Below, in pieces: positions 12,411-25,036 of a DNA stretch of 64,000 bases (positions are counted from its first letter, which is position 1; every line of letters starts with the position of its first letter). The notes below the pieces were generated by a model, which was not told where the DNA came from, did no database searches, and was given only the letters and a program-made list of their open reading frames with translations. A program made the translations under genes and the position numbers. The DNA lies in IMG/VR virus record IMGVR_UViG_3300044712_001937, positions 124,001 through 188,000 of that record, one strand, 5' to 3'.

Positions 12411-13010
12411 TTATAATGATAAATTTTTTATTAAATAATAAATAATCCCATTTCCATGTTTAATGAATTCAATTAAATTATAATTTCCTGAAGTATTATC
12501 AATATCTGATGATAATACATCTTGAATCATACCTGAAAATGTAATTTCAGAACCATTTGCTCTTATAATTAAACTTGCTTTTCCACCAATTATAGTATCA
12601 TTAGAACCACTAATAACTAAAGCACTTACTTGATTATATGTATTATAGTATGTTCCTGAATATTTGTCAAGTTTTACTCCATTAACTGGATTATAATTTA
12701 AATTAGTTATTGGTTTAGAATTTCCAATATCTATAATTTGCTGTGTTGTAAGTCCAGTAGAAACACCACTAATTGGAATATATGCTGCTTTCCATTTATT
12801 TGTTTGACTATCCCATACATAAAACGAGTCAGTATCTCCTATTACAGCATACCAACCATCTAATCCTTCATTATAATTAGATTCTAATTCTGTTTTTGTG
12901 TTAAAAAAACCTTTATATTTTTCACTATTATTATCTAATGTATAAACACCTGTTTTTAAATATTGTCTATAAGCATTTTTAGATAAATTATCAAAATTAT
13001 TTGTTGACAT
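12411..13010 (-). CDS. Hypothetical (possible structural/fibre-associated) protein
   Basis: YKGFF...GWYAVIGDTDSFYVWD motif; preceded by AGTATTTAT motif on minus strand near 13030. Confidence 0.6.
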   Translation of the reverse strand: MSTNNFDNLSKNAYRQYLKTGVYTLDNNSEKYKGFFNTKTELESNYNEGLDGWYAVIGDTDSFYVWDSQTNKWKAAYIPISGVSTGLTTQQIIDIGNSKPITNLNYNPVNGVKLDKYSGTYYNTYNQVSALVISGSNDTIIGGKASLIIRANGSEITFSGMIQDVLSSDIDNTSGNYNLIEFIKHGNGIIYYLIKNLSL

Positions 13011-13163
13011 ATTATAATGTTTTAATAATAAATACTTTTAATTTAAAAAAAATAGATATAATAAATATATATTTAAAATAAATTTATCTTACATTAAATC
13101 AATATTTTAAATATTTTTTTAAAAAAATATTTAAAAAAATTTGGAGGATATTGAAACTTTTTT

Positions 13164-13171
13164 TATATTTG
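13164..13171 (+). promoter_or_regulatory. Bacteroidota sigmaA-type -7 element (TAnnTTTG) upstream of tRNA array
   Basis: TATATTTG with TTTG about 20 nt upstream. Confidence 0.6.
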
Positions 13172-13214
13172 CAGAGTATTTAAATGAAACGAAAATAATA
13201 AAAAATATTTAGAG

Positions 13215-13340
13215 ATGAAAACAACGGTATCAAGTAGAACAATTTCTATATCGACTTCAATTAGTCGCAATGGAAATTCTATATTTTGTTCAAATTTTGG
13301 AGGCAGAAGTAGAAATGATATCGGGTTATTGTTTTCATAA
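13215..13340 (+). CDS. Putative attenuator leader peptide (41 aa, Ser/Thr/Ile/Arg-rich)
   Basis: MKTTVSSRTISISTSISRNGNSIFCSNFGGRSRNDIGLLFS*; 3' end complementary to terminator 5' arm. Confidence 0.65.
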   Translation: MKTTVSSRTISISTSISRNGNSIFCSNFGGRSRNDIGLLFS

Positions 13341-13367
13341 GTTATGTGAACTTTGAAAATTAAACGA

Positions 13368-13398
13368 GAAACCCGATTCGAAAGATTCGGGTTTTTTT
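13368..13398 (+). terminator. Attenuator terminator
   Basis: aaacccga-ttc-gaaa-gat-tcgggttt plus U7. Confidence 0.85.
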
Positions 13399-13414
13399 GT
13401 TTTAAGTTAGTTAT

Positions 13415-13427
13415 GTTCTTTGACATG
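13415..13427 (+). promoter_or_regulatory. boxA-like antitermination element
   Basis: tgttctttgacat just before the first tRNA. Confidence 0.5.
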
Positions 13428-13438
13428 CTGGGAAATTT

Positions 13439-13526
13439 GTCGGGTTGCGTGAGTGGTCGAAACGGGGGTTCTGCAAAAGCTCTATTCCGAAAGGTACACA
13501 TTGGTTCAAATCCAATACCCGACTCA
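13439..13526 (+). tRNA. tRNA-Cys(GCA), long variable arm
   Basis: gtcgggt/acccgac acceptor, ct-gca-aa loop, U73. Confidence 0.85.
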
Positions 13527-13530
13527 ATAT

Positions 13531-13620
13531 TCTTGGGTTGCTTTAGTTGGTCGAAAAGTCCAGACTGTTAATCTGGTGAGATTTATCTCCATCATAGGTT
13601 CGAATCCTATCCCAAGAGCA
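13531..13620 (+). tRNA. tRNA-Asn(GTT), long variable arm
   Basis: tcttggg/cccaaga, ccaga-ctgttaa-tctgg, V-arm gagat-tt-atctc. Confidence 0.85.
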
Positions 13621-13687
13621 GTAATTTATTTATTAATATTTAGGTCGTTTGTTCGAATATAAAGTATTTATATTAAATATTTAATAT

Positions 13688-14272
13688 ATGAGTAATTTAA
13701 AAAATAATATCTTAAAATTAAGAGATGAAGGTAAAACATATAGTGAAATAAGTAAATTATTAAATTGTGCAAAAAGTACGATTTCTTATTATTGTAAATT
13801 ATATGGAAAATCAACTATTATTAGCAATAAAATAAATAATAGTGATATTTTATTATTTCAAGAGTTATATGATAATTATCATTCAGTTAATAAAGTTGCA
13901 TTTATTACAAATAGGTCTAAATCTACAATTTTAAAATATGTTAAAACTATAAAAAGAAATAAACAAACGTATGATGAAATAAAAAAAAATAACATTAAAT
14001 ATGTTAATAACTTTAGAAAAAGATTGAAAATAAAATCAGTTGATTATAAGGGCGGAAAATGTATTAAATGTGGTTATAATAAATGTATAGCAGCATTAGA
14101 ATTTCATCATAGAAATCCAAATAATAAAGATTTTGAAATTTCATCATCAAAAATTTTATCTTGGAATAAAATAAAAATTGAATTAGATAAATGTGATTTA
14201 GTTTGTAGTAATTGTCATAAAGAAATTCATTGGGATGTATCCCCTCTGCCTGATAAGCAGTTGGAAGGGTAA
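13688..14272 (+). CDS. HNH endonuclease with N-terminal HTH
   Basis: GGKCIKCGYNKC..ALEFHH...CSNCHKEIH. Confidence 0.85.
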   Translation: MSNLKNNILKLRDEGKTYSEISKLLNCAKSTISYYCKLYGKSTIISNKINNSDILLFQELYDNYHSVNKVAFITNRSKSTILKYVKTIKRNKQTYDEIKKNNIKYVNNFRKRLKIKSVDYKGGKCIKCGYNKCIAALEFHHRNPNNKDFEISSSKILSWNKIKIELDKCDLVCSNCHKEIHWDVSPLPDKQLEG

Positions 14273-14310
14273 TTTGGTTACATAAGGGTTCAATTCCCTT
14301 CTTCCCAACT
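14231..14310 (+). tRNA. Atypical tRNA-Ile(GAT)-like RNA lacking canonical D-arm
   Basis: tgggatg/cttccca acceptor; ctgc-ctgataa-gcag; T-arm aaggg-ttcaatt-ccctt; D-loop-like aatttggtta placed 3' of anticodon arm. Confidence 0.6.
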
Positions 14311-14317
14311 AAAATAT

Positions 14318-14402
14318 AGTGACGTGGATGAATGGTTTAGTCACCAGTCTGATACACTGGATTCTTAGGAATAATATGGGTTCGAATCCCATCGTCACTA
14401 CA
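14318..14402 (+). tRNA. tRNA-Ile(GAT), long variable arm
   Basis: agtgacg/cgtcact; ccagt-ctgatac-actgg; V-arm attc-ttag-gaat. Confidence 0.85.
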
Positions 14403-14457
14403 ATATTTAATAATAAATATTATGATATTAAATAAGTATTTATTATAAAATTTATTT

Positions 14458-14757
14458 ATGAAAAATATTAAATCAAAACAAAGACTATTTGAAGTTATTC
14501 AAAAAATAGATGACACTTATAAATCTAAAGAAATTCTTAATGAAACTAAAGCTTTTGGCAAATTAAGAAAATTAAATAAAAATTTATACGATGATACTAT
14601 TAATTTGGAAGAAAAAATTGGTGAAAATGTATTAAATTTAATTAAAGATTCTATTGAAAAAAATAATTTAAAATATAAAAATGATGAAGAACGTAAATTG
14701 GTATATCTTATAATTTTAGATTTGATTCTTAGTCGTTTTTTAGATAAAACAGAATAA
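14458..14757 (+). CDS. Hypothetical protein
   Basis: ORF after AGTATTTAT motif. Confidence 0.6.
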   Translation: MKNIKSKQRLFEVIQKIDDTYKSKEILNETKAFGKLRKLNKNLYDDTINLEEKIGENVLNLIKDSIEKNNLKYKNDEERKLVYLIILDLILSRFLDKTE

Positions 14758-14762
14758 CAATT

Positions 14763-14855
14763 GGAAAGTTACCCAAGTTGGTGAAGGGGACACACTGCTA
14801 ACGTGTTAGGTCATCTAATAAATGGCGCAAGAGTTCGAGTCTCTTACTTTCCGCA
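14763..14855 (+). tRNA. tRNA-Ser(GCT)
   Basis: Class II cloverleaf, ct-gct-aa, G73. Confidence 0.9.
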
Positions 14856-14919
14856 TTTGGTTTTTGGGTCTACTCCCGTGCTCAAGGATATCAAAAAATA
14901 TTTGTTAACGGGAGTCCTT

Positions 14920-15076
14920 GGAGAATTGGCAGAGTTGTTTAATGCGATGGTCTGGTTCAATATGATTGATTAAGGGTGAACTCCTTAGTCTTTTGCTCAT
15001 GAACGAAAACTATTGTTGCAAAGTAGAGAAGCAAATATTGAAAGCAACCAGAGGTTCGAAACCTTTATTCTCCACA
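14920..15076 (+). tRNA. tRNA-Ser(CGA or GGA)-like with 50-nt anticodon-loop insert
   Basis: ggagaat/attctcc, Ser-type D-arm, atggt-ct[insert]cgaaa-actat, enlarged V-arm. Confidence 0.65.
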
Positions 15077-15081
15077 AAAAT

Positions 15082-15170
15082 GGAAGATTGTCCGAGTGGT
15101 TTATGGAGGCGGTCTTGAAAACCGTTGTGCCCTAAAAAGCACCGTAGGTTCGAATCCTACATCTTCCGCA
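15082..15170 (+). tRNA. tRNA-Ser(TGA)
   Basis: Canonical class II cloverleaf. Confidence 0.93.
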
Positions 15171-15245
15171 ATAGAATCCCTTAAATAAGTAGTTGGTGTT
15201 GCCCCGTTACTGATGAGGATATTTGGGATAGTGTACGGGTTCTTT

Positions 15246-15330
15246 GGAAAGTAGCACTCAATGGTGAGTAACAAGGCTTGAACCCTTGGCTATCCTCCGG
15301 GGTAAGCGTTCGATTCGTTTACTTTCCGCA
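15246..15330 (+). tRNA. tRNA-Ser(TGA), 8/4 (allo-tRNA-like) fold
   Basis: ggaaagta/tactttcc 8-bp acceptor, agcg/cgtt 4-bp T-stem, caagg-cttgaac-ccttg. Confidence 0.75.
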
Positions 15331-15331
15331 C

Positions 15332-15577
15332 TTAAGTTGAATTTGCAGTTCAATTTAATATATGAATAGATAAGAACAATAGTATCTGCAAACTGCTATA
15401 AGTGTGTTTGTTCATATTGAATCCTTGCTTGCTTGGGACGCTGCTTCTAATGTTCAGTTGGGGTATTAAAATGCATCCGTGATTGACAACACGGAAACAA
15501 TAAAAATATCTTCCGAGACATTATCATGTTCGCAATAACATGTGGAATGCGTGAGTATAAGGCTCACACAAGGATTA
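15332..15577 (+). ncRNA. Unknown structured RNA(s) between tRNAs
   Basis: Two hairpins with complementary loops (tttgcag/ctgcaaa); multibranch domain closed by aatccttg/caaggatt. Confidence 0.5.
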
Positions 15578-15582
15578 AATCT

Positions 15583-15656
15583 GGTGACGTAGCTGAGTTG
15601 GTTTAGCGATGCCCTGAAAAGGCATAGAGGTCGGTTCGATTCCGACAGTCACCACA
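15583..15656 (+). tRNA. tRNA-Phe(GAA)
   Basis: atgcc-ctgaaaa-ggcat. Confidence 0.9.
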
Positions 15657-15818
15657 ATTAAAATCTGGTCACATAAGTGTATGTCCTAACCAGAAATACA
15701 TAACCTCATTAGCAGGGAGTATCTTAGTTTGGGCAACTAAGAATGTGAAAATAAAAATAGGTCGGGTTGCAGGTGGCGCAATTTGGCTAACTGTCTCACA
15801 AGGCATCCTATATAATAT

Positions 15819-15893
15819 GGAGATATAGCAAAGATGGTCTATGCAACGGACTGAAAATCCGAGGATACTGGCTCGATACCAGTTATCTCCACA
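15819..15893 (+). tRNA. tRNA-Phe(GAA), second copy
   Basis: cgga-ctgaaaa-tccg. Confidence 0.85.
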
Positions 15894-15902
15894 AAATAAT
15901 TT

Positions 15903-15976
15903 GCGAGTGTAGCACAACGGTTAGTGCGCCAGACTTCCAATCTGGGGATGTGGGTTCGATTCCCTTCACTCGCTCA
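15903..15976 (+). tRNA. tRNA-Gly(TCC)
   Basis: gcgagtg/cactcgc, ct-tcc-aa, U73. Confidence 0.92.
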
Positions 15977-15979
15977 TTT

Positions 15980-16053
15980 GAAGCTATAGTTTAATTGGAT
16001 AGAATGTCCCCAGCAAAGGGGTTGGTATAAGTTCGAGTCTTGTTGGCTTCACA
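15980..16053 (+). tRNA. tRNA-like RNA with aberrant anticodon loop
   Basis: Acceptor, D and T arms intact; cccc-agcaaa-gggg, no U33. Confidence 0.55.
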
Positions 16054-16103
16054 ATAGGTCTGAGGGAGTCCTTTGAAGGTATAAATAACCTGTCCCTCTC
16101 CAC

Positions 16104-16176
16104 GCAATAGTAGCATAGCGGTTAGTGTATCTGCCTACCACGCAGAATTTCGTGAGTTCGAGTCTCACCTATTGCT
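16104..16176 (+). tRNA. tRNA-Gly(ACC)
   Basis: gcaatag/ctattgc, tctgc-ct-acc-ac-gcaga, U73. Confidence 0.8.
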
Positions 16177-16225
16177 CTCGGTCGTTTTTTGTACTTCTCA
16201 GTATTTATATTGAAAAGTACAAATT

Positions 16226-16906
16226 ATGGCAAGAAAAGAAAAACAATACCATTTCATTTATAAAACTACTAATATTTTAACTGGTAAATATTATTATGGA
16301 ATGCATAGTGGCAATAATCTGGAGGATGGTTATTTAGGTTCAGGTAAAAGATTAAGACGTTCTATAAATAAATATGGCAAAGAAAACCATAAACGTGAAA
16401 TTATTGAATTTCTTCCGGATAGAAAATCTTTAATTGAACGTGAGAAAGAAATTGTTAATTTAAATGAAATTGCAAAAGTAGATTGCATGAATTTAGTTGT
16501 TGGTGGAAATGGTGGATTTAATGTAGAAATTGTGAAAAAGGGAAGATTAGCTGTTGATAATATTATGATAACAAGATATGGTATTAATTGGCGTTCTATT
16601 TTAGCTAAAAAAACTTTTAGTGATTTATCAATCAATAAACGTAATGAAATTAATAAAAAAATAATTGAAACCAATAAAAAAAATGGATTTACTTATGATA
16701 ATTTTAAAAATAAAAAGCATACCGAAGAAACAAGGAAAAAATTGAGTAAATCAAGAAAAGGAACAGGAATTGGTAATAAAAATTCACAATTTGATACATG
16801 TTGGATTACTAAAAATGGTATTAATAAAAAAATAAAAAAAGAAAATTTAATTTTATATTTAAAAGATAATTGGATTAAAGGTAGAAAATTAAAATGCATT
16901 CTATAG
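16226..16906 (+). CDS. GIY-YIG (Seg-like) homing endonuclease with NUMOD3
   Basis: FIYKTTN..TGKYYYGMH...YLGSG; KKHTEETRKKLS. Confidence 0.9.
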   Translation: MARKEKQYHFIYKTTNILTGKYYYGMHSGNNLEDGYLGSGKRLRRSINKYGKENHKREIIEFLPDRKSLIEREKEIVNLNEIAKVDCMNLVVGGNGGFNVEIVKKGRLAVDNIMITRYGINWRSILAKKTFSDLSINKRNEINKKIIETNKKNGFTYDNFKNKKHTEETRKKLSKSRKGTGIGNKNSQFDTCWITKNGINKKIKKENLILYLKDNWIKGRKLKCIL

Positions 16907-16970
16907 CTTAACTGGTAAAGCACATCCTTTGTAACGATGGGAAGCGGTTCGAGTCCGATAGAATGCTCTA
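16896..16970 (+). tRNA. Atypical tRNA-Thr(TGT)
   Basis: gcattcta/tagaatgc 8-bp acceptor; tt-tgt-aa loop with closing mismatch; weak T-stem. Confidence 0.55.
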
Positions 16971-17036
16971 AACTAATAGTTGATGCGAGATGGTGAGTGT
17001 ACATAAACACATGTGGTAAGATTATTAGTTTTATTT

Positions 17037-17109
17037 AGTGATGTGGCGCAATGGTTAGCGCAGGACTCTTATAAGGTCGAGGTTGGGGGTTCAAGTCCCT
17101 TCATCACTA
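17037..17109 (+). tRNA. tRNA-Ile(TAT)
   Basis: gact-ct-tat-aa-ggtc; A73. Confidence 0.85.
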
Positions 17110-17181
17110 CTAAATTTTTAAAATGTCTTTTATAATTGAAATAAAGATATTATTTTTGTTTAAATTAAAAATAAATGTATC

Positions 17182-17574
17182 ATGAGTATTCAGGAAAAAA
17201 TTAGGGAAGACATGGTTAATTCCATGAAGAACAAAGACTCTGAAAAGTTGAATTTGTTAAGAGTAGTTATTGGTGAATTTGGAAGAATTGGTAAAGAACT
17301 TTCAGATGAACAATCGGTAAAAGTTATTCAAAAAATGCATGAAAATGCAATTGAAATGAAAAACGATTATGAAATTAGTATACTTGAAGGTTATATTCCT
17401 AAAAAATTAGATGAATCTCAAATAAAAGAAATTGTAAAATCGATTATTGATTCAAATAATATTTCGAGTATTAAAGAAATGGGTAAAGTTATGGGTGAAT
17501 TAAAGAAACATCCTAATGTTGCTCAAATCGATAATAAAATAGCAAGTACTGTTATTAAAGAAATGTTGGCGTAA
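17182..17574 (+). CDS. yqeY: GatB/YqeY domain protein
   Basis: SIQEKIREDM..SMKNKD...YIPKKL...MGKVMG. Confidence 0.85.
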   Translation: MSIQEKIREDMVNSMKNKDSEKLNLLRVVIGEFGRIGKELSDEQSVKVIQKMHENAIEMKNDYEISILEGYIPKKLDESQIKEIVKSIIDSNNISSIKEMGKVMGELKKHPNVAQIDNKIASTVIKEMLA

Positions 17575-17588
17575 AGCCAACATTTTAT

Positions 17589-17663
17589 GCATCGGTAGCT
17601 CAGTGGTAGTAGCGTCTGCCTGTTAAGCAGAGGGTCGTAGGTTCAATCCCTACCCGGTGCGCA
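17589..17663 (+). tRNA. tRNA-Asn(GTT)
   Basis: tctgc-ctgttaa-gcaga; G73. Confidence 0.9.
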
Positions 17664-17700
17664 AATAAAAATTATAAGTATTTATAAGAAAATTTTTAAT

Positions 17701-17967
17701 ATGAGTAAAGTTGGTGATTTTTTAATTAATAGTTGGAATAGTTTTCCAAAAATTTATTTATATATTTTCTTAATAGCTATTATTGCTGGTTTAGCTGGTG
17801 GTATTGAAGTAGGTGGATATACAGTATTTATTTTAGGTGGTGCATTTATTGCATTTATTTGGCTTAGAATGATATGGAATTGGTTAGATAGTTGGTTGAA
17901 TTTAAGTTACAATTTAAAATTATTAGGATATTTGATTAAATCGTGGTTTACTAAAAATGAAAATTAA
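17701..17967 (+). CDS. Hypothetical 2-TM membrane protein
   Basis: Two hydrophobic helices. Confidence 0.6.
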   Translation: MSKVGDFLINSWNSFPKIYLYIFLIAIIAGLAGGIEVGGYTVFILGGAFIAFIWLRMIWNWLDSWLNLSYNLKLLGYLIKSWFTKNEN

Positions 17968-18487
17968 AAAAGTTATACATAAAAACGATAGAAGACCATT
18001 CCCTTATTTTGATTTCTTCATTCCTGTAATTATATTTCGAAATAAATCTTACTCAATTTCAAAATATTTTAAATTTGATTCTTCAACACTATACCATTTT
18101 GAAGATGAAGACCAATACGATATTAATAAATTAATGGGATTTAGTATTGGAATGCATCATAATAATTCGTTTAGATTTGGATGGAGACCTAATAAGGATT
18201 TAAGTAAAATGGAAATCGTAGGTTATGAATATTTAAATAAATTACGTATTCCTGAACTACCTATTTGTGAAGTTAAATTGGATAAATGGTATAAATTTGA
18301 ATTAAAATATATTGCAGAAACTGGTCAAATTGAGTATGTTGTAACAGATGGAAATGAAATTTTTAGTTGTAAACATCCTGCAACCAACATAAAAAGAAAA
18401 TTTAATCTTGGTTATAAATTATATCTTTACTTTGGTGGAAATAAAAAAGCACCTCATGATATGATTATTTATCAGGATAATGAATAA
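17957..18487 (+). CDS. Hypothetical phage protein
   Basis: DINKLMGFS..HHNNSFRFGWR...YFGGNKKAPHD; beta-rich. Confidence 0.7.
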   Translation: MKIKKVIHKNDRRPFPYFDFFIPVIIFRNKSYSISKYFKFDSSTLYHFEDEDQYDINKLMGFSIGMHHNNSFRFGWRPNKDLSKMEIVGYEYLNKLRIPELPICEVKLDKWYKFELKYIAETGQIEYVVTDGNEIFSCKHPATNIKRKFNLGYKLYLYFGGNKKAPHDMIIYQDNE

Positions 18488-18492
18488 TTGAT

Positions 18493-18568
18493 GCCGAAGT
18501 AGCTTTAATTGGTAGAGCACCTGACTTGTAATCAGGGGGTTGGGGGTTCGAGTCCCTTCTTCGGCTCA
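18493..18568 (+). tRNA. tRNA-Thr(TGT)
   Basis: cctga-cttgtaa-tcagg. Confidence 0.92.
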
Positions 18569-18600
18569 TAAAAATAATTTTATCAATAATACCAATATGA

Positions 18601-18834
18601 ATGACGGTGAAGAAAATAAACAGGGAAAAGTTAGCAACTTTATTTCTTTTTTTAGGAACATTTTTCAATCCTATGGGTTACGATGCAATACTAAAATATT
18701 TAATAGACAAGACCGGAAATTATTGGTATTCAATTTCTATTTTTTACCTATTATCAGTATTTTTCTTTATATTATATTTTGTATTTGCTAAAATAAATCC
18801 ATTAAATATTTTTAAATTTAATAAGAATAAATAA
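18601..18834 (+). CDS. Hypothetical membrane protein
   Basis: GTFFNPMGYDA; 2 TM helices. Confidence 0.6.
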   Translation: MTVKKINREKLATLFLFLGTFFNPMGYDAILKYLIDKTGNYWYSISIFYLLSVFFFILYFVFAKINPLNIFKFNKNK

Positions 18835-18872
18835 TAAAATATTAATAATTTGTTTTATATTTGTGATAACAT

Positions 18873-18947
18873 GTCTCCATAGCTCAACGGATAGAGCATT
18901 AGTCTTCTAAACTAAGGATTTGCGTTCGATTCGCAGTGGAGATACTA
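18873..18947 (+). tRNA. tRNA-Arg(TCT)
   Basis: ttagt-cttctaa-actaa. Confidence 0.9.
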
Positions 18948-18960
18948 ACAAAACTAAACT

Positions 18961-19080
18961 ATGACAGTTATTTGTCCCAAATGTAAACAAACAGTTTTTA
19001 TTTTTGAAAATAAAGATTATGTTATTTGTTGTGGAGAAGTAATCTTCGTAGTTAAAACGCTTCCATCGTCCAAGGGATAA
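18961..19080 (+). CDS. Small Zn-ribbon protein (39 aa, below ORF-track cutoff)
   Basis: MTVICPKCKQ...ICCGE. Confidence 0.5.
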   Translation: MTVICPKCKQTVFIFENKDYVICCGEVIFVVKTLPSSKG

Positions 19081-19132
19081 GGCATCGGTTTCCTAAACCG
19101 ATAATACAGGTTCGAGTCCTGTTGGGAGTACA
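19059..19132 (+). tRNA. tRNA-Arg(CCT)
   Basis: tcggt-ttcctaa-accga. Confidence 0.88.
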
Positions 19133-19160
19133 AAACTATTAACAAATAAAACCAAAAATT

Positions 19161-19358
19161 ATGCTTTATTGTAATTATTCTAATGAAATATCACGTGCTC
19201 GTAGGTTGATTAACATTTCAATCGATAGATTGATGTTTATAAAAAACAGATTTAGTGGTAATAACCAAAATCACAAGGATATTTTAGTTAAAACAGATAA
19301 ATTATTAGTTGAATATCAGGAATTGGATAAGGAGGTGAAAAAGCATGAATATCATTAG
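19161..19358 (+). CDS. Hypothetical protein
   Basis: ORF. Confidence 0.5.
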   Translation: MLYCNYSNEISRARRLINISIDRLMFIKNRFSGNNQNHKDILVKTDKLLVEYQELDKEVKKHEYH

Positions 19359-19623
19359 TATTGAGAATACAAAAAGATTTAATAGTTTTTCAAATAAAGT
19401 TGAAATATCTTCAAATTATAAATATAGTGATAATAAAAATTATTTACTTATACTTAATGATGATGATATTAACAATGATAATTGTATTATTAAATTAAGA
19501 GGATATTCTATATCTTGTTTATTGATTCCAAAAAGATATCGTTTTACTTTTTTTGATGAAACACCTATTGGTAAAATAATAAGACGTAATTTAACTGAAG
19601 ATTTTTCAATAAGCTATTACTAA
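19345..19623 (+). CDS. Hypothetical protein
   Basis: ORF. Confidence 0.5.
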   Translation: MNIISIENTKRFNSFSNKVEISSNYKYSDNKNYLLILNDDDINNDNCIIKLRGYSISCLLIPKRYRFTFFDETPIGKIIRRNLTEDFSISYY

Positions 19624-19633
19624 TAGCTTATTT

Positions 19634-19707
19634 GCTCCTGTAGTTCAATGGATAGAATGCTTGGTTTCGACCCAAATGATGCGAGTTCAAGTCTTGTCGG
19701 GAGTACT
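19634..19707 (+). tRNA. tRNA-Arg(TCG)
   Basis: ttgg-tttcgac-ccaa. Confidence 0.85.
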
Positions 19708-19721
19708 AAAAAAAAAGAATT

Positions 19722-19880
19722 ATGGCAACAAAAATAAGAGAAACTCCAATTTTATATGGAAAAGATGCTAAAAGATTTCTTGAAGCAATTGCTAATCCTA
19801 AAAAAATTTCAAAAGAAGAATTGGAGAGAATTAAAAAAAATTACGAAGAAATAAAAGGTATATCTAAAGGTATATTTTAA
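19722..19880 (+). CDS. Small protein resembling antitoxins of GNAT-toxin pairs
   Basis: MATKIRETPILYGKDAKRFLEAIANPKK (52 aa; not in ORF track). Confidence 0.55.
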   Translation: MATKIRETPILYGKDAKRFLEAIANPKKISKEELERIKKNYEEIKGISKGIF

Positions 19881-19883
19881 TAT

Positions 19884-19962
19884 GCATCTGTAGCTCAATT
19901 GGATTAGAGCACCTGTCTACGAAACAGGAGGTTTAAGGGTTCGAATCCCTTCAGATGTACTA
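19884..19962 (+). tRNA. tRNA-Arg(ACG)
   Basis: cctgt-ctacgaa-acagg. Confidence 0.92.
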
Positions 19963-20030
19963 ATTTTAATTAAAATATGAAGAGAACTAATACATCGTAA
20001 ATCAGGTTTCTTACAACTGATTTATGAATT

Positions 20031-20228
20031 ATGGAAAATTCCAATTTAAGTAAGAACCCGACCAAATATTGGTTGGTTGAACTCACGCTTACGAGTGGTG
20101 AAGTTCTCGAATTTTATGTTAAAGCTAAAACACAATTTGATGCTTATGAAAAAGCTGAAGAATATATGTTTTGGCTCGATAACAAAAAATTAAAAAATAA
20201 ATTAAAAGAGTTTAGGCTTATGCCTTAA
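20031..20228 (+). CDS. Hypothetical protein
   Basis: ORF. Confidence 0.55.
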   Translation: MENSNLSKNPTKYWLVELTLTSGEVLEFYVKAKTQFDAYEKAEEYMFWLDNKKLKNKLKEFRLMP

Positions 20229-20269
20229 AAAATGAGTTTTGATGGTATCTCGCCATGAAAAACCATTAC

Positions 20270-20326
20270 ATACGGGATGTAGATATTGGTGAACTGAAAC
20301 ATCTAAGTAATCAACGAGTCCCGTAT
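20270..20326 (+). ncRNA. Hairpin presenting a 23S rRNA helix-11 sequence
   Basis: GAACTGAAACATCTAAGTA (20291-20309) inside atacgggat/gtcccgtat stem. Confidence 0.65.
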
Positions 20327-20330
20327 TAAT

Positions 20331-20404
20331 GTGGGTAACGCATAAATGGTGGTGCACCAGCTTGCCATGCTGGAATAGAGTCGGTTCAATTCCGATTACC
20401 CACT
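20331..20404 (+). tRNA. tRNA-Gly(GCC)
   Basis: ccagc-ttgccat-gctgg; U73. Confidence 0.85.
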
Positions 20405-20462
20405 CTACATTTCGAAAATATTTTTTAGCTTTTTATAGTATTTATATGAAAAATATAATACT

Positions 20463-21176
20463 ATGGAAAAATGGAATGAAAATTCGATAAATTTATTACT
20501 TAAATATTTTAATGAAAATAAATCATATGAAGAAATAGCATTATTATTAAATCGAACATATTCTTCAATAAAAAATAAATTAAATAAACTTGGGTATAAA
20601 TTTAGAGATGTTAATCCTGCAATAATTTCTTATAAATGTGAAAATTGTGGAAATGAATTTAATGATAAAACTTCTGTTGAACGAAGATTTTGTTCAAATT
20701 CATGCGCAGCAAAAATTAATAATAAATTAAGGCATAAAATAAGTGATAAAAAATGTTTAAATTGTAATAAAATATTACATTCACATCAAAATAAATATTG
20801 TTCAAATAATTGTTGTACTGAATATCATTGGAAACAAACAATAACTAAAATCGAAAATGGCGATACATCATTTAATGAAAGAATATATAAAAAATATTTA
20901 ATTCATAAACATGGAAACAAATGTATGAAATGTGGTTGGAATGAAATTAATCCTGTAACTAAATTAGTTCCAATACAACTTGAACATAAAGATGGAAATT
21001 CTGATAACCATAATTTAAATAATTTAGAATTATTATGTCCTAATTGTCATTCACTAACTCCAACATTTGGTGCATTAAATAAAGGAAATGGACGTGATGC
21101 ATTAAAAAAGAAAAAATTAATATTCAAAGAAATAAAGTGTGATAATACATGGCAAAGGTCTACCCCGTCACACTAA
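20463..21176 (+). CDS. HNH endonuclease with Zn-finger repeats
   Basis: CENCG..FCSNSC; CMKCG...LEHKDGN..N...LLCPNCH. Confidence 0.88.
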   Translation: MEKWNENSINLLLKYFNENKSYEEIALLLNRTYSSIKNKLNKLGYKFRDVNPAIISYKCENCGNEFNDKTSVERRFCSNSCAAKINNKLRHKISDKKCLNCNKILHSHQNKYCSNNCCTEYHWKQTITKIENGDTSFNERIYKKYLIHKHGNKCMKCGWNEINPVTKLVPIQLEHKDGNSDNHNLNNLELLCPNCHSLTPTFGALNKGNGRDALKKKKLIFKEIKCDNTWQRSTPSH

Positions 21177-21179
21177 AAT

Positions 21180-22068
21180 AAATAACACAGAGGATTCATC
21201 GCTGTAGCAATACAGAGGAAGTTCAACACATCTCCGCAAAAAGTGGGAGGCTCAACGTTAATCGGAGTCGTTAATACCACTGAGGATGCAAGCCATACAG
21301 ATTTAGACGGTGTGCGGGTCTATGATAATCGGGTTGGTGCTTAGATAAATGATGAATTTAAGTTCTTTGATTTTTTATTTCATTATTTATTTTTTATAGT
21401 ATTTATATTTATAATTGAATATTATGAAAAATAAAATTTATTATGTGTATCAATTAATTTCTTCAAATGATGAAATTTTTTACATTGGAAAAGGTTCTGG
21501 TAATAGAATGTATCAGCATGTTAGTATTGCTATGGGTAAATCAATTAGTAGAACAAAAAATCTTAAACTATATAATAAAATAAAGAAAATTATTGATAGT
21601 GGTGGATTTATTAAATGTGAAATTATTTTTAAAAGTGAAAATGAAAATGATTGTTTTAATGAAGAAATAAGACTTATAGAAAAAATAGGTCTTATTAATT
21701 TATGTAATTTAACTATTGGTGGTGAAGGTACTTCGGGATATAAATTATCTGAAGAAACTAAATTAAAAATGTCTTTAGCTAAAAAAGATAAAAAAAGAGA
21801 AAATATAAGTAAAATTCATAAAGAAAATTTATTAAAAAATCCTCAAATTTTTAAAATTGGTCATGATGGTTATTGGAATGGTAAAACATTATCTGAAGAA
21901 ACTAAATTAAAAATGTCTTTAGCTAAAAAAGGTCGTAAATTTTCAAAAGAACATAAAGAAAAAATATCGCAATCATTAAAAGGACGAGAACTTTCAGAAA
22001 CACATAAAAATAATATTAAAAAATCAAAGACTTATTAAAACAGAAAGTTGACTACGCTCATGTTATTT
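21180..22068 (+). ncRNA. rnpB: Minimal RNase P RNA interrupted by a homing-endonuclease insert
   Basis: P1 aaataaca/tgttattt; P2 attcatc/gatgaat; P3 ctgta-gcaa-tacag; GAGGAAGUUCAAC pairing with AACAGAAA-GUUGACU (P4 with bulged U); tagataaat before the P2 3' strand. Confidence 0.85.
21424..22038 (+). CDS. GIY-YIG homing endonuclease with NUMOD3 repeats, inside rnpB
   Basis: YYVYQL...FYIGKGSGNR...NLTIGGEG; LSEETKLKMS twice. Confidence 0.88.
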   Translation: MKNKIYYVYQLISSNDEIFYIGKGSGNRMYQHVSIAMGKSISRTKNLKLYNKIKKIIDSGGFIKCEIIFKSENENDCFNEEIRLIEKIGLINLCNLTIGGEGTSGYKLSEETKLKMSLAKKDKKRENISKIHKENLLKNPQIFKIGHDGYWNGKTLSEETKLKMSLAKKGRKFSKEHKEKISQSLKGRELSETHKNNIKKSKTY

Positions 22069-22104
22069 ATTTTTATATATTTGTAGAAACTAAAAATTCC
22101 CTAC

Positions 22105-22377
22105 ATGAAGAAAATAATTTCTGTAAATGAAGAATATGACTATTATAATGGAAAGGTTGTGGCTTTTAAAGAAGACGATTCTATTTACATATATGCTTGC
22201 TATCATTATAGAGCATCAGAATATGGATTTTTCGATATATGTAATGATAAATCTCCACGTTATTTAGCTTATACAATAAATTCAATAAGACATGCATTAG
22301 AATGTCATGGTAATATATATGAATTTGATTCATTTAATGAATTCATAGAAAAAGCAAATGAAATATTTAATAATTAA
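22105..22377 (+). CDS. Hypothetical protein
   Basis: ORF after TATATTTG. Confidence 0.6.
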   Translation: MKKIISVNEEYDYYNGKVVAFKEDDSIYIYACYHYRASEYGFFDICNDKSPRYLAYTINSIRHALECHGNIYEFDSFNEFIEKANEIFNN

Positions 22378-22382
22378 TTAAT

Positions 22383-22937
22383 ATGCGTATCTCTACTCAA
22401 GACAAAAATGGAAATTGGATTCCAGCAACTCCACTACAATTAATGTGTGAAATAGAAAATTGTGATGTTACAGATAATAAAATTGGTGATATTCTTAAAG
22501 AATATTTTAGAAATCCAGAAGAATCTGATGGTTCAGATTGGGATTCAGAACCAATTATTCTATGTGAAAAACATAGTGCAAATCATTTAAAATGTCCTAA
22601 AAATTTGGAAGATGTATTTGAATGGTTATTAAAAATAACATCAGATAAAAATGATTTAAATAAATGGCTTAAATTACCTGAAGATGATGCTATTATTTCA
22701 GTACATCATACTATTGGAATGGCTATTAGAAATGAATTAGGTTTATGGCATAATGGAACTATTGTACCATTTTTTCATAATTTAGGTATATTTCATGCTG
22801 ATGATATGAGTACAATTATTTTAACTTCATTTCATAGGTCAAAAAATAATATTGATATTAAACTTGAAGAACAAGTTAAACATTATATAGATTATTGGGA
22901 AAAAGAAAATCCTGACGTTAATAAAGGTATATTATAA
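22383..22937 (+). CDS. Hypothetical protein (DUF6794-like C-terminus)
   Basis: HHTIGMAIRNELGLW...GIFHADDMSTIIL. Confidence 0.7.
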   Translation: MRISTQDKNGNWIPATPLQLMCEIENCDVTDNKIGDILKEYFRNPEESDGSDWDSEPIILCEKHSANHLKCPKNLEDVFEWLLKITSDKNDLNKWLKLPEDDAIISVHHTIGMAIRNELGLWHNGTIVPFFHNLGIFHADDMSTIILTSFHRSKNNIDIKLEEQVKHYIDYWEKENPDVNKGIL

Positions 22938-22984
22938 AAAAATCACATATTCTATATTATAGTATTTATAGAAAAATATTTATT

Positions 22985-23170
22985 ATGTGGATATATGAAA
23001 GAATTGAAGAAGAGTTTAATACATTGCCTGAATTAAAAAAGAGATTAAAAAAAATAGGCGAAGATGGCTGGGAGATTACATCGTATAATGAAAGTAATGA
23101 AAAATCTAAAATAAAAATCATTGTTTTAGTTAAAAAAGAAGAAATTAAAATAGAAAAAAAAGTTTTATAA
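22985..23170 (+). CDS. Small DUF4177-like protein
   Basis: LKKIGEDGWEI. Confidence 0.55.
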   Translation: MWIYERIEEEFNTLPELKKRLKKIGEDGWEITSYNESNEKSKIKIIVLVKKEEIKIEKKVL

Positions 23171-23171
23171 C

Positions 23172-23582
23172 ATGCAATTACTTGATGAAATTAAGAAAAT
23201 TATAAAAAAATATGAATTAAATCCTAAATTAATTCCAGAAGAATACCCAGATGTTTATCTTTATATTAGAATAAATCCGGAAGTTGAAAATATGTTTAAA
23301 TCATTAAAAAACGATTCATATTTTATAAATAAATATGAAAAGCATATAGGAAAAGGACATTACGGATTTTCTATTGGTCAACCAATAATCCCAAGTTGGA
23401 ATGAAGTTCTTGATGAAATAATTGAACTTTGTATAAAAAAAGACCCGAATTTTATAATAAAACAAATCAAAATGAAATTTGGCTTTATATGTTTTTATAC
23501 TGAAAGTGATGTAATTTCTGATTTAAATGAAATAGAAGCACTTATAACAAACACATTATTTAATATTAAATTTAAATATTAA
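23172..23582 (+). CDS. Hypothetical phage protein
   Basis: QIKMKFG..CFY motif. Confidence 0.6.
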   Translation: MQLLDEIKKIIKKYELNPKLIPEEYPDVYLYIRINPEVENMFKSLKNDSYFINKYEKHIGKGHYGFSIGQPIIPSWNEVLDEIIELCIKKDPNFIIKQIKMKFGFICFYTESDVISDLNEIEALITNTLFNIKFKY

Positions 23583-23615
23583 TCTGCAACATTATAATAA
23601 AATCTTCGTATTATT

Positions 23616-23885
23616 GTGAAAGATTTCGAATTATTAAAACGAACATATCCTGTATCAGAATATGACCGATATTGTGATGGGTATGATTTTATTATAAAAA
23701 ATAGTACACCTGAAGAACGACAGGATTGGAAGATTAAGGATAACGAAATCAAACGAATAATTAAAGCTGGTGAAAAATATATTTATCAAGTAGCTAAAGA
23801 AGGAAGAGAATTTAAAACAATGTGTATGTGTTTTGAGAATTATGCTATTATTCGGAAAAAAATATTTAAATTTGAAGATTATTAA
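23616..23885 (+). CDS. Hypothetical protein
   Basis: ORF directly after GCAAC-N16-CGTA promoter. Confidence 0.6.
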   Translation: MKDFELLKRTYPVSEYDRYCDGYDFIIKNSTPEERQDWKIKDNEIKRIIKAGEKYIYQVAKEGREFKTMCMCFENYAIIRKKIFKFEDY

Positions 23886-24035
23886 ATATAAAACATATGA
23901 ATTTATTAGATTTTTTAGATAAACAAAGTGATGGTAGATTAATATTAATTGGAGTAGTATTTGTTTTTGTAGTTGCTATTATTTTTGAAGGTATCGCTGA
24001 AATAATAAGATATCTTAAAAAGTAATATTTTTATT

Positions 24036-24111
24036 GGCTCTATAGCTCAATTGGTCAGAGTGACAGTCTCTAAAACTGGAGGTTATGGGTTCGAACCCCA
24101 TTAGAGCCACA
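24036..24111 (+). tRNA. Amber suppressor tRNA (anticodon CTA)
   Basis: ggctcta/tagagcc; cagt-ct-cta-aa-actg; canonical D and T arms; A73. Confidence 0.9.
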
Positions 24112-24133
24112 ATATTAACTAAAAACTAAATAA

Positions 24134-25036
24134 ATGAAAGAAATTATTCTTGACAATTCATTAACACCTGCAGTTGATTATAAATTCAATAACTTTAATC
24201 CTGAATATGCATTTAATGATTGTAAAGGTTTTAAAGTTGTCACTACTTTAGAATCTGAAATATTTCATCGTAATTATTTAACATATCTTGAATTATGTTG
24301 GAGAAAACATTATGGAATAGTTATTTCACCCACAATTTTATGGAATTTAGTTTTAAATAATTTTGCACATCAAGTTAATAAAACTCCCGAAAAATTCCGA
24401 AAATATTTTACTGAATCTGAAGAAAAACAAGAAATTATTGTACAACAAGGTGGAAATTTAATTGATGTAAATTTAATTATTTCAGAAATTACATCTAAAA
24501 TTCCTTCTAATATTATGGAAAATTTCTTTCCTAAATATACTACAGATACTGAAAAATCAAAAATTGCTAATTACACTGCATTTCTCGACATGGTTAGTCC
24601 ATATTATAACTATGGAATGTTATTATGTGGTATTCCTAAAATTAAAATATTAGGAGAAAAAAGCGATTGGTTAACTATGATGTATAATCTTGGCGCAATT
24701 GTTGCACAAATCCCGGAATTTGAAGAATATGTATTTAAAGTAACATCTATAATTGCTGATATTATCTATGAAAATATTGACTACAGTAAATTTTTTACTT
24801 TAGAAAGATGTGGTTCAGGAAGTCAAGTAATGGTATCTGGTTGGATTATCAATTTTTTTATTGAAATACCCCGTATTGCATATCCTGAAAACTTCATTTC
24901 TTGTGTTTCAAAAATAGATTATAAATGCTATAATGATGGTAATGATTATCGTCTTTATGCAGGATTATTCACTTCAATTATTGAAGATGGTTATCTTATT
25001 CCGGCATTTGATAATGTTTACTACAAAAAAATATAA
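24134..25036 (+). CDS. DUF4419-like protein
   Basis: HYGIVISPT.LW; CGIPKIKILGEKSDW; CGSG...SGWI. Confidence 0.75.
   Translation: MKEIILDNSLTPAVDYKFNNFNPEYAFNDCKGFKVVTTLESEIFHRNYLTYLELCWRKHYGIVISPTILWNLVLNNFAHQVNKTPEKFRKYFTESEEKQEIIVQQGGNLIDVNLIISEITSKIPSNIMENFFPKYTTDTEKSKIANYTAFLDMVSPYYNYGMLLCGIPKIKILGEKSDWLTMMYNLGAIVAQIPEFEEYVFKVTSIIADIIYENIDYSKFFTLERCGSGSQVMVSGWIINFFIEIPRIAYPENFISCVSKIDYKCYNDGNDYRLYAGLFTSIIEDGYLIPAFDNVYYKKI

Follow-up and report, generated by a model that had tools for sequence, protein, structure and literature searches.

The window analyzed here is a 64,000-nucleotide stretch of DNA corresponding to positions 124001–188000 of a 364,702-bp virus record with terminal repeats and 26% G+C, a jumbo phage genome that holds 49 tRNA genes and a tmRNA. 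Within it, a minus-strand gene is followed by an intergenic region and then, on the plus strand, by a Bacteroidota-type promoter, a short open reading frame (ORF), an intrinsic terminator, a boxA-type element and an array of tRNA genes interspersed with homing-endonuclease-like ORFs and a YqeY-like ORF (tRNAs identified with ARAGORN and Rfam tRNA matches, ORFs with Pfam; coordinates are collected in the table below). An earlier note, made from the sequence alone, had listed these elements, and we find that its observation is correct: every one of them is present where the note placed it.

Features of the tRNA operon head and the downstream array (positions in the window; region numbers follow the predicted RNA pairings; the transcription start is inferred and not mapped)
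Feature	Positions	Strand	Sequence or content
Upstream gene, end	13010	-	
Intergenic region	13011-13214		
-33 element	13140-13143	+	TTTG
-7 box (TAnnTTTG)	13164-13171	+	TATATTTG
Inferred transcription start	near 13176	+	
Leader ORF	13215-13340	+	MKTTVSSRTISISTSISRNGNSIFCSNFGGRSRNDIGLLFS; 41 codons and a TAA stop
Region 1 (predicted anti-antiterminator)	13218-13229	+	
Region 2 (antiterminator strand)	13319-13335	+	ends 2 nt before the stop codon
Region 2 core	13320-13327	+	ATCGGGTT
Segment folded as the antiterminator	13316-13381	+	
Terminator hairpin with U-tract	13367-13398	+	
Region 3 (terminator 5' arm)	13367-13379	+	
Region 3 core	13370-13377	+	AACCCGAT
Region 4 (terminator 3' arm and U-tract)	13384-13398	+	
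boxA-type element	13414-13431	+	TGTTCTTTGACATGCTGG
tRNA genes (20)	13439-20405	+	Cys, Asn, Ile, Ser x3, Phe x2, Gly, Cys, Gly, Thr, Ile, Asn, Thr, Arg x4, Gly

The spacing of TTTG and the -7 box (20 nt) is the -33/-7 layout of the Bacteroidota primary sigma factor, in which the -7 box occupies positions -12 to -5 (PMC9723704). This promoter pattern alone is not above chance in the window (4 matches found, 4.2 expected), and its weight comes instead from conservation at the same position in relatives, where the same TTTG-N19/20-TAnnTTTG arrangement stands ahead of homologous leaders; a scan for sigma-70 promoters is not relevant to promoters of this phylum. The terminator hairpin folds at -16.1 kcal/mol (z -4.4; 0 of 200 shuffles fold as well), although a simple terminator scan did not list it, probably because of its one internal mismatch. 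The core of region 2 is the exact complement of the core of region 3, as the earlier note had claimed, and the segment spanning both but lacking the terminator 3' arm folds into this alternative at -18.4 kcal/mol (z -3.5; 0 of 200 shuffles), so that the antiterminator and terminator folds are about equally stable.

The earlier note had also claimed that the amino acids of the leader largely match the downstream tRNA species, and this holds: of the 40 leader residues after the initiator Met, 35 belong to the eight amino acids of the downstream tRNAs {C,N,I,S,F,G,T,R}, whereas the composition of the genome predicts 18.1 (p = 3e-8). Under strict wobble, 32 of 40 codons are read by the operon's own anticodons, the other three own-family codons (TCT, ACT) would be read by the UNN tRNAs if four-way wobble applies, and about 12 of the 15 anticodon species are probed. 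The emphasis that the note placed on rare codons is, however, probably misplaced. ACG, TCG, CGC, GGC and GGG are indeed rare (each 1–4% of synonymous use), but ATA is not (32%), most of the rare G+C-rich codons sit in paired RNA segments (region 1, region 2 and an internal hairpin), and overall synonymous usage in the leader is only slightly shifted (0.47 against an expected 0.50); we therefore rejected rare codons as the sensor. Recoding of TAG as a confounder of the ORF calls was likewise rejected, because treating TAG as sense barely changes ORF cover.

The genome contains three further units built in the same way, and its arrayed tRNA genes fall into four operons that together cover the 20 amino acids once each: A (Pro, His, Gln), B (Asp, Glu, Val, Leu, Ala, Trp, then the tmRNA and Leu, Leu, Met), D (Tyr, Lys) and E, the operon in the window. 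The assignment of the distal Leu, Leu and Met tRNAs to operon B is an inference. Each operon is headed by a TAnnTTTG box, an ORF of 24–41 codons, a segment at the 3' end of the ORF that copies the 3' arm of the terminator, and a terminator, which in A, B and E is followed by TGTTCTTTGA...; the boxA-type element of operon B is identical to that in the window, whereas operon D has no boxA. The head of operon D does carry the same -7 box as the window, followed by CAGAGT, and a 92%-identical copy of the terminator. The leaders (A, MKNLIHIHPQPQQHPQMLNGDNMA; B, MMKKVLDILVAETLVALLWAVDEDMLCSVG; D, MRTFGTYYYGKKSYKHLIGFGNSMSKMQR) are not similar to one another, yet each is enriched 2–5 fold in the amino acids of its own downstream tRNAs and not in those of the other operons. 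Own-set counts are 10/23 in A (set {P,H,Q}; 1.7 expected; p = 2.5e-6), 22/29 in B (set {D,E,V,L,A,W,M}; 9.5 expected; p = 2.5e-6), 8/28 in D (set {Y,K}, with the run YYYGKKSYK; 4.0 expected; p = 0.04, the weakest of the four) and 35/40 in E. The 4x4 table of leaders against operons gives p = 1e-16 (chi-square), and the true leader-to-operon assignment is the best of the 24 possible permutations.

In all four units, the 3' segment of the ORF pairs with the terminator 5' arm far better than shuffled sequence does (-13.6, -18.5, -12.0 and -12.0 kcal/mol, with shuffle p from 0 to 0.015; estimates for the window's duplex range from -12.0 to -15.6 kcal/mol). The terminator sequences differ between units and the ORF segment differs with them, as in TGAATGGGG for CCCATTCA in A and CAGTCGGGT for ACCCGACTG in B. 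In the minimum-energy folds without a ribosome, the terminator of the window is formed and region 2 is held by the start of the ORF, the ORF itself folding at -33.0 kcal/mol (z -3.2). Sequestration of region 2 by an upstream region 1 is predicted in all 23 units examined, although this rests on prediction only; in types A and D region 1 overlaps the control codons, and in operons A and D of this genome it is the run of control codons itself (HPQPQQ; YYYGKKS), whereas in E it is the start-codon region. The type E leader, in which control codons are spread over about 35 codons without a tight run, reads more like a transit-time sensor. The distance from region 2 to the stop codon varies from -10 to +23 nt among units, and the geometry of occlusion by a ribosome is hence not uniform.

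To ask whether these features are conserved, we searched for relatives. A blastn search against phage records matched only one tRNA, indicating that the leaders are not found by DNA similarity, but a scan of viral contigs for the boxA-like 15-mer found it inside tRNA arrays in 19 of 108 hits, several of which carry the same Tyr/Lys and Thr/Cys/Asn/... operons with homologous leaders. Peptide-pattern scans then recovered 7 loci of type E, 14 of type A, 19 of type B and 5 of type D, including three more complete jumbo phages of 322–363 kb with the same four-operon layout. Nine further distinct leaders homologous to that in the window share the core SRNGNGIFCS.F.GRN. Across 44 distinct leader peptides from relatives, the own-set fractions for types A, B, D and E are 0.36, 0.71, 0.33 and 0.78, against backgrounds of 0.07, 0.33, 0.14 and 0.45, and this holds even where the sequence has diverged; for example, the N-terminal halves of the type E leaders differ in sequence but remain rich in Ser, Thr, Ile and Asn.

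The earlier note had named loss of the 8-nt complementarity in homologs as an outcome that would count against its reading. We find the opposite: the complementarity is kept in homologs and changes together with the terminator sequence. Examples in type E are CGAGTCTTT / AAAGACTCG (in the relative G002), GGGTTTTTGT / ACAAAAACCC (in the relative G001) and ATACGGGTTCT / AGAACCCGTAT, and in type B CAGTCGGGT / ACCCGACTG becomes TAGTCGGGT / ACCCGACTA. Cognate duplexes average -14.6 kcal/mol against -10.7 kcal/mol for noncognate pairs, and shuffling the arms within a type gives p = 8.5e-4; however, the terminators of types B, D and E share a CCCG core, such that many noncognate pairings are nearly as good as cognate ones and covariation within types is less clean than the contrast between types. 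These comparisons were made by direct pairing tests, and no alignment-based count of compensatory pairs was made because a MAFFT alignment of the type E leaders put the terminator arms out of register. All units have a terminator hairpin with a U-tract (-11.8 to -21.8 kcal/mol). Several units that an automated terminator search missed were checked by eye.

An ORF of at least 22 codons ending just before the terminator is present in all 23 units examined, against a chance of 0.17 per unit. Signs of purifying selection on the peptides are modest (pN/pS of 0.48–0.88; excess of third-position changes, p = 0.025), which fits selection on composition more than on sequence but is not proof of translation. 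One alternative is that the promoter, ORF and terminator form an independent small gene, coding a micropeptide or small RNA, which the terminator merely insulates, with the tRNA array expressed by constitutive leakage or from another promoter. The type E peptide core is well conserved at the amino acid level, as a functional peptide would be, and no transcript data exclude a second promoter. We nevertheless consider this alternative very unlikely, as it does not explain why four nonhomologous peptides each mirror their own downstream tRNA set, why the 3' end of the ORF tracks the terminator sequence across lineages, or why different tRNA partitions in other phages (below) come with different leaders. 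Moreover, only 15 nt separate the U-tract from boxA and 40 nt separate it from the first tRNA, and no TAnnTTTG box lies there. In one relative, operon D of G001, the Lys tRNAs have been lost and the leader ORF is also lacking.

Two further, independent lineages carry comparable units. A second phage group (47% G+C; seven contigs, of which L091 is an example) has an unrelated leader, MKRRGNMDNFVNWFGFNRAADKDGGSCPLERVE, in which 28 of 32 residues are in the set of the 18 tRNAs downstream. Its terminator is also unrelated, its region 2 matches that terminator (GGAAGTTGCCCGCTT against AAGCGGGAACTTC; -19.0 kcal/mol; 0 of 2000 shuffles), and a boxA-like element follows. The cultured Cellulophaga phage phi4:1 divides its tRNAs differently, and its two leaders follow that division: MKIQRLHLQELEQPIISGGTGV, which includes QRLHLQELEQP, stands before Pro, Glu, Gln, His, Leu, Leu, Arg, and (V)QLTKTGITVIDKTKGARAYLGDTVIG, inside the annotated gp075 and with the stretch TKTGITVIDKTKGARAY, stands before Ala, Lys, Ile, Gly, Met, Asp, Thr, Val, Arg, Met, Tyr. 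Each comes after the same repeated promoter and before a terminator. The phi4:1 units are weaker, however, in that antiterminator pairing is weak (p = 0.035 and 0.13) and the second leader would need a GTG start.

The boxA-type element matches the rrn boxA of Bacteroidota, and three of the four operon heads of the genome, including that in the window, carry an exact copy of the element found upstream of 23S rRNA in that phylum. Many of the hits in a scan of bacterial genomes for GTTCTTTGACATGYTGG are in Bacteroidota, the element follows the spacer tRNAs in noncoding contexts, and in the four Bacteroidota loci checked with Rfam it lies 28–85 nt upstream of the 23S rRNA, which is where rrn operons carry their second boxA set (PMC10250234). 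boxA is reported to be necessary and sufficient for forming the rrn antitermination complex (PMC10250234). From this we infer that the host belongs to Bacteroidota and that polymerases passing the terminator are made termination-resistant for the long untranslated array; this function is inferred from work in Escherichia coli, and binding of Nus factors was not assayed. The placement of boxA after the terminator would keep the gate itself sensitive.

We propose, with high confidence, that the element is a ribosome-mediated (leader-peptide) transcription attenuator that gates a phage tRNA operon, one of four such gates in the genome, and the central interpretation of the earlier note, that a leader-peptide attenuator controls the tRNA array, is thus supported. 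In this model, host RNA polymerase starts at the Bacteroidota-type promoter and transcribes an ORF built almost entirely from codons read by the tRNAs encoded downstream. If those codons are decoded quickly, the ribosome would follow the polymerase to the end of the ORF and cover region 2, the terminator would form and transcription would stop at 13398; if any of those charged tRNAs is scarce, the ribosome would lag, region 2 would remain free to pair with the terminator 5' arm, and the polymerase would read through, transcribe the host-type boxA and proceed along the 7-kb array. With no ribosome at all, region 1 would hold region 2 and the terminator would form. Because the products of the operon are the tRNAs being tested, the loop would be a direct negative feedback on tRNA supply, separate for each of four amino acid groups. 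Our analysis shows the sequence elements, the match between leaders and tRNAs, the alternative pairings, and their conservation and covariation, whereas translation of the ORF, the coupling of ribosome position to termination, the function of boxA and the natural trigger are all inferred. There are no transcript or ribosome data for the phage, whose DNA occurs in rhizosphere and soil metagenomes; RNA runs contain only fragments (4–11% of the sampled words), and the dependence of read-through on leader translation and charged tRNA was not measured. Leader-peptide attenuation has precedent in the host phylum, where strong clues for it were described at amino acid biosynthesis operons in a flavobacterium (PMC9723704).

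It is also possible, though unlikely, that the leader acts through something other than the intrinsic terminator, such as Rho-dependent polarity, transcript stability or processing, or a general sensing of translation stress without amino acid specificity, as in erm-type leaders. The transit-time character of the type E leader is consistent with this alternative, and the boxA after the terminator suggests that Rho is a concern on these untranslated transcripts. However, canonical hairpins with U-tracts are conserved in every unit, specific and covarying complementarity to the 5' arm of the hairpin is what an intrinsic-terminator switch needs, and four leaders with distinct compositions argue for amino acid group specificity.

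The closest counterparts are the classical leader-peptide attenuators of amino acid biosynthesis operons (trpL, hisL, pheL, leuL and the multivalent thrL and ilvL), which share the short promoter-proximal ORF rich in regulatory codons, the three alternative pairings (1:2, 2:3, 3:4) ending in an intrinsic terminator, and read-through upon a lagging ribosome; like thrL and ilvL, the element described here senses several amino acids with one leader. It differs from them in that the regulated genes are tRNAs and not enzymes, in that up to eight amino acids and about 12 tRNA species are probed by one leader, and in being phage-borne, present four times per genome such that the units together cover all 20 amino acids, and followed by an rrn-type boxA. 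Amino acid biosynthesis or aminoacyl-tRNA synthetase genes are the usual targets of such attenuators, although this is not part of the definition of the mechanism. The pheM leader of E. coli pheST and the Bacillus hisS leader likewise apply attenuation to a component of the translation apparatus that handles the sensed amino acid (for hisS, PMC2965389), but these control synthetase genes for a single amino acid in cellular genomes, whereas here whole tRNA operons of a virus are controlled. T-box riboswitches follow an analogous logic, in which the state of the tRNA pool decides between a terminator and an antiterminator upstream of translation-related genes, but a T-box binds uncharged tRNA directly, needs no ORF and is found mainly in Firmicutes; an Rfam search of positions 12500–25000 returned no T-box match even at E <= 1. 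The same search gave only chance-level matches to Thr_leader (23.7 bits against a gathering score of 55; E = 0.8) and MicC (28.9 against 90). In rrn antitermination (boxA, NusB/NusE, rrnTAC) the identical 17-nt element lies upstream of 23S rRNA in Bacteroidota, whereas here it heads phage tRNA operons downstream of a regulated terminator, so that only polymerases that have passed the gate would be modified. Finally, the tRNA arrays of T4, mycobacteriophages, vibriophages and huge phages are also large clusters, often with homing endonucleases, and are thought to compensate for codon usage or for loss of host tRNA; full-text literature searches found no report of a regulatory device that senses tRNA supply in such arrays, although papers outside the searched collection may exist.

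The mechanism class is thus classical, and what is new is the target (tRNA operons, such that the product closes the loop), the multi-amino acid leaders, the division of a full tRNA set into four separately gated groups, the viral setting and the coupling to an rrn-type boxA; full-text searches found no description of this, although papers outside the searched collection may exist. How phages regulate their tRNA genes is essentially unknown, and whether cells or viruses can measure tRNA supply and correct it directly is an old question, to which this element would provide a direct product-feedback loop on tRNA abundance built from a textbook device. The correspondence between leader composition and operon content is a readable code that lets regulatory groupings be predicted from sequence alone. 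The element is also common, occurring in four complete jumbo phages and dozens of viral contigs from soil, water and wastewater, and the weaker form in phi4:1 makes it accessible at the bench. It further shows a phage borrowing the host's rRNA antitermination signal for its tRNA arrays, and offers compact sensors of decoding capacity, specific to groups of amino acids, for Bacteroidota genetics.

The trigger suggested by the earlier note, that host tRNAs are depleted or cleaved and that the device is a tRNA-damage sensor, shares this mechanism and is plausible, but it is one of several possible causes of slow decoding and was not tested here; the general statement is feedback on the supply of charged tRNA. 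We hold the tRNA-damage reading only tentatively. The device would respond to any shortage of decodable tRNA and, as the operons are grouped by amino acid, an attack on a single tRNA family by an anticodon nuclease would induce only its own group. At its most far-reaching, and with similarly limited confidence, jumbo phages of Bacteroidota could carry a complete tRNA set run by a four-channel controller, in which each channel tests the decoding capacity of the cell and tops up only the tRNA families that are short, the natural purpose being inducible counter-defense against host tRNA cleavage or depletion. Many of the arrayed tRNAs come in two forms, a normal one and one with a long variable arm, and it is speculation that the latter are nuclease-resistant variants serving as replacements. 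Nothing in the sequence identifies a nuclease as the trigger, and simple demand from an A+T-rich phage on a host tRNA pool would drive the same loop. The leader probes nearly all tRNA species of its operon and not a known nuclease target set.

Three tRNAs of the window, those for Cys, Asn and Ile (see the table), carry a long, stem-forming variable arm of the sort normally seen only in Ser, Leu and Tyr tRNAs, and tRNAs of this kind are also found genome-wide and in the three related complete jumbo phages (G001–G003). Elsewhere in the genome, Gln, Glu, Val, Trp, Lys and a His (ATG, 96 nt) tRNA show the same long arm. We have no explanation for the charging identity or purpose of these tRNAs. 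Cys and Asn each have a normal-length twin with the same anticodon later in the array, and the Asn-like one is 90% identical to a tRNA annotated as “tRNA-OTHER/pseudo” in Cellulophaga phage phi4:1.

Coordinates of additional features in the window and, for the tmRNA, in the genome
Feature	Coordinate system	Position	Details
Mini-ORF	window	13184-13198	four codons (MKRK); in the leader's 5′ untranslated part
tRNA-Cys (GCA)	window	13439-13525	87 nt; long variable arm
tRNA-Asn (GTT)	window	13531-13619	89 nt; long variable arm
Homing-endonuclease-like ORF	window	13688-14272	between tRNA genes
Extra tRNA-like match	window	14231-14308	weak (30.8 bits); overlaps the end of the first endonuclease-like ORF
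tRNA-Ile (GAT)	window	14318-14401	84 nt; long variable arm
Homing-endonuclease-like ORF	window	16226-16906	between tRNA genes
YqeY-like protein	window	17182-17574	Pfam PF09424, E = 1e-20; in the middle of the tRNA array
tRNA with anticodon CTA	window	24036-24110	amber-reading; labeled “Pyl” by ARAGORN
tmRNA	genome	111992-112351	outside the window; tag ending AELAIAA

Of the two homing-endonuclease-like ORFs that sit between the tRNA genes, one has HTH_38/HTH_7 domains with a Cys/His-rich C-terminus and the other has GIY-YIG plus NUMOD3, and both lie inside the transcript that we propose to be controlled by the attenuator.

The split of the 20 amino acids into {P,H,Q}, {D,E,V,L,A,W,M}, {Y,K} and {C,N,I,S,F,G,T,R} is largely kept in four jumbo phages (this genome and G001–G003), with a few stray tRNAs, but differs in phi4:1 and in the L091 group (a second phage group, named here after one of its contigs). 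We found no rule behind the split, whether codon box, synthetase class or otherwise. The phage-encoded tmRNA lies within or after operon B (the {D,E,V,L,A,W,M} group), between the Trp tRNAs and the Leu/Leu/Met tRNAs, and is conserved in two other jumbo phages (loci L122 and L124 in relatives). In operon D (the {Y,K} group), one relative, G001 (loci L120/L121), has lost all its Lys tRNAs, and its Tyr-only operon keeps a terminator but has no leader ORF, which looks like decay of the sensor together with its operon.

The same boxA-type 15-mer occurs inside tRNA arrays of otherwise unrelated viral contigs that have no recognizable leader ORF (L007, L012, L074, and others), and hence use of boxA in phage tRNA arrays is wider than the attenuator. 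TAG is the rarest stop (13 of 273 long ORFs). Treating TAG as sense barely lengthens ORFs, and genome-wide recoding is therefore unlikely.
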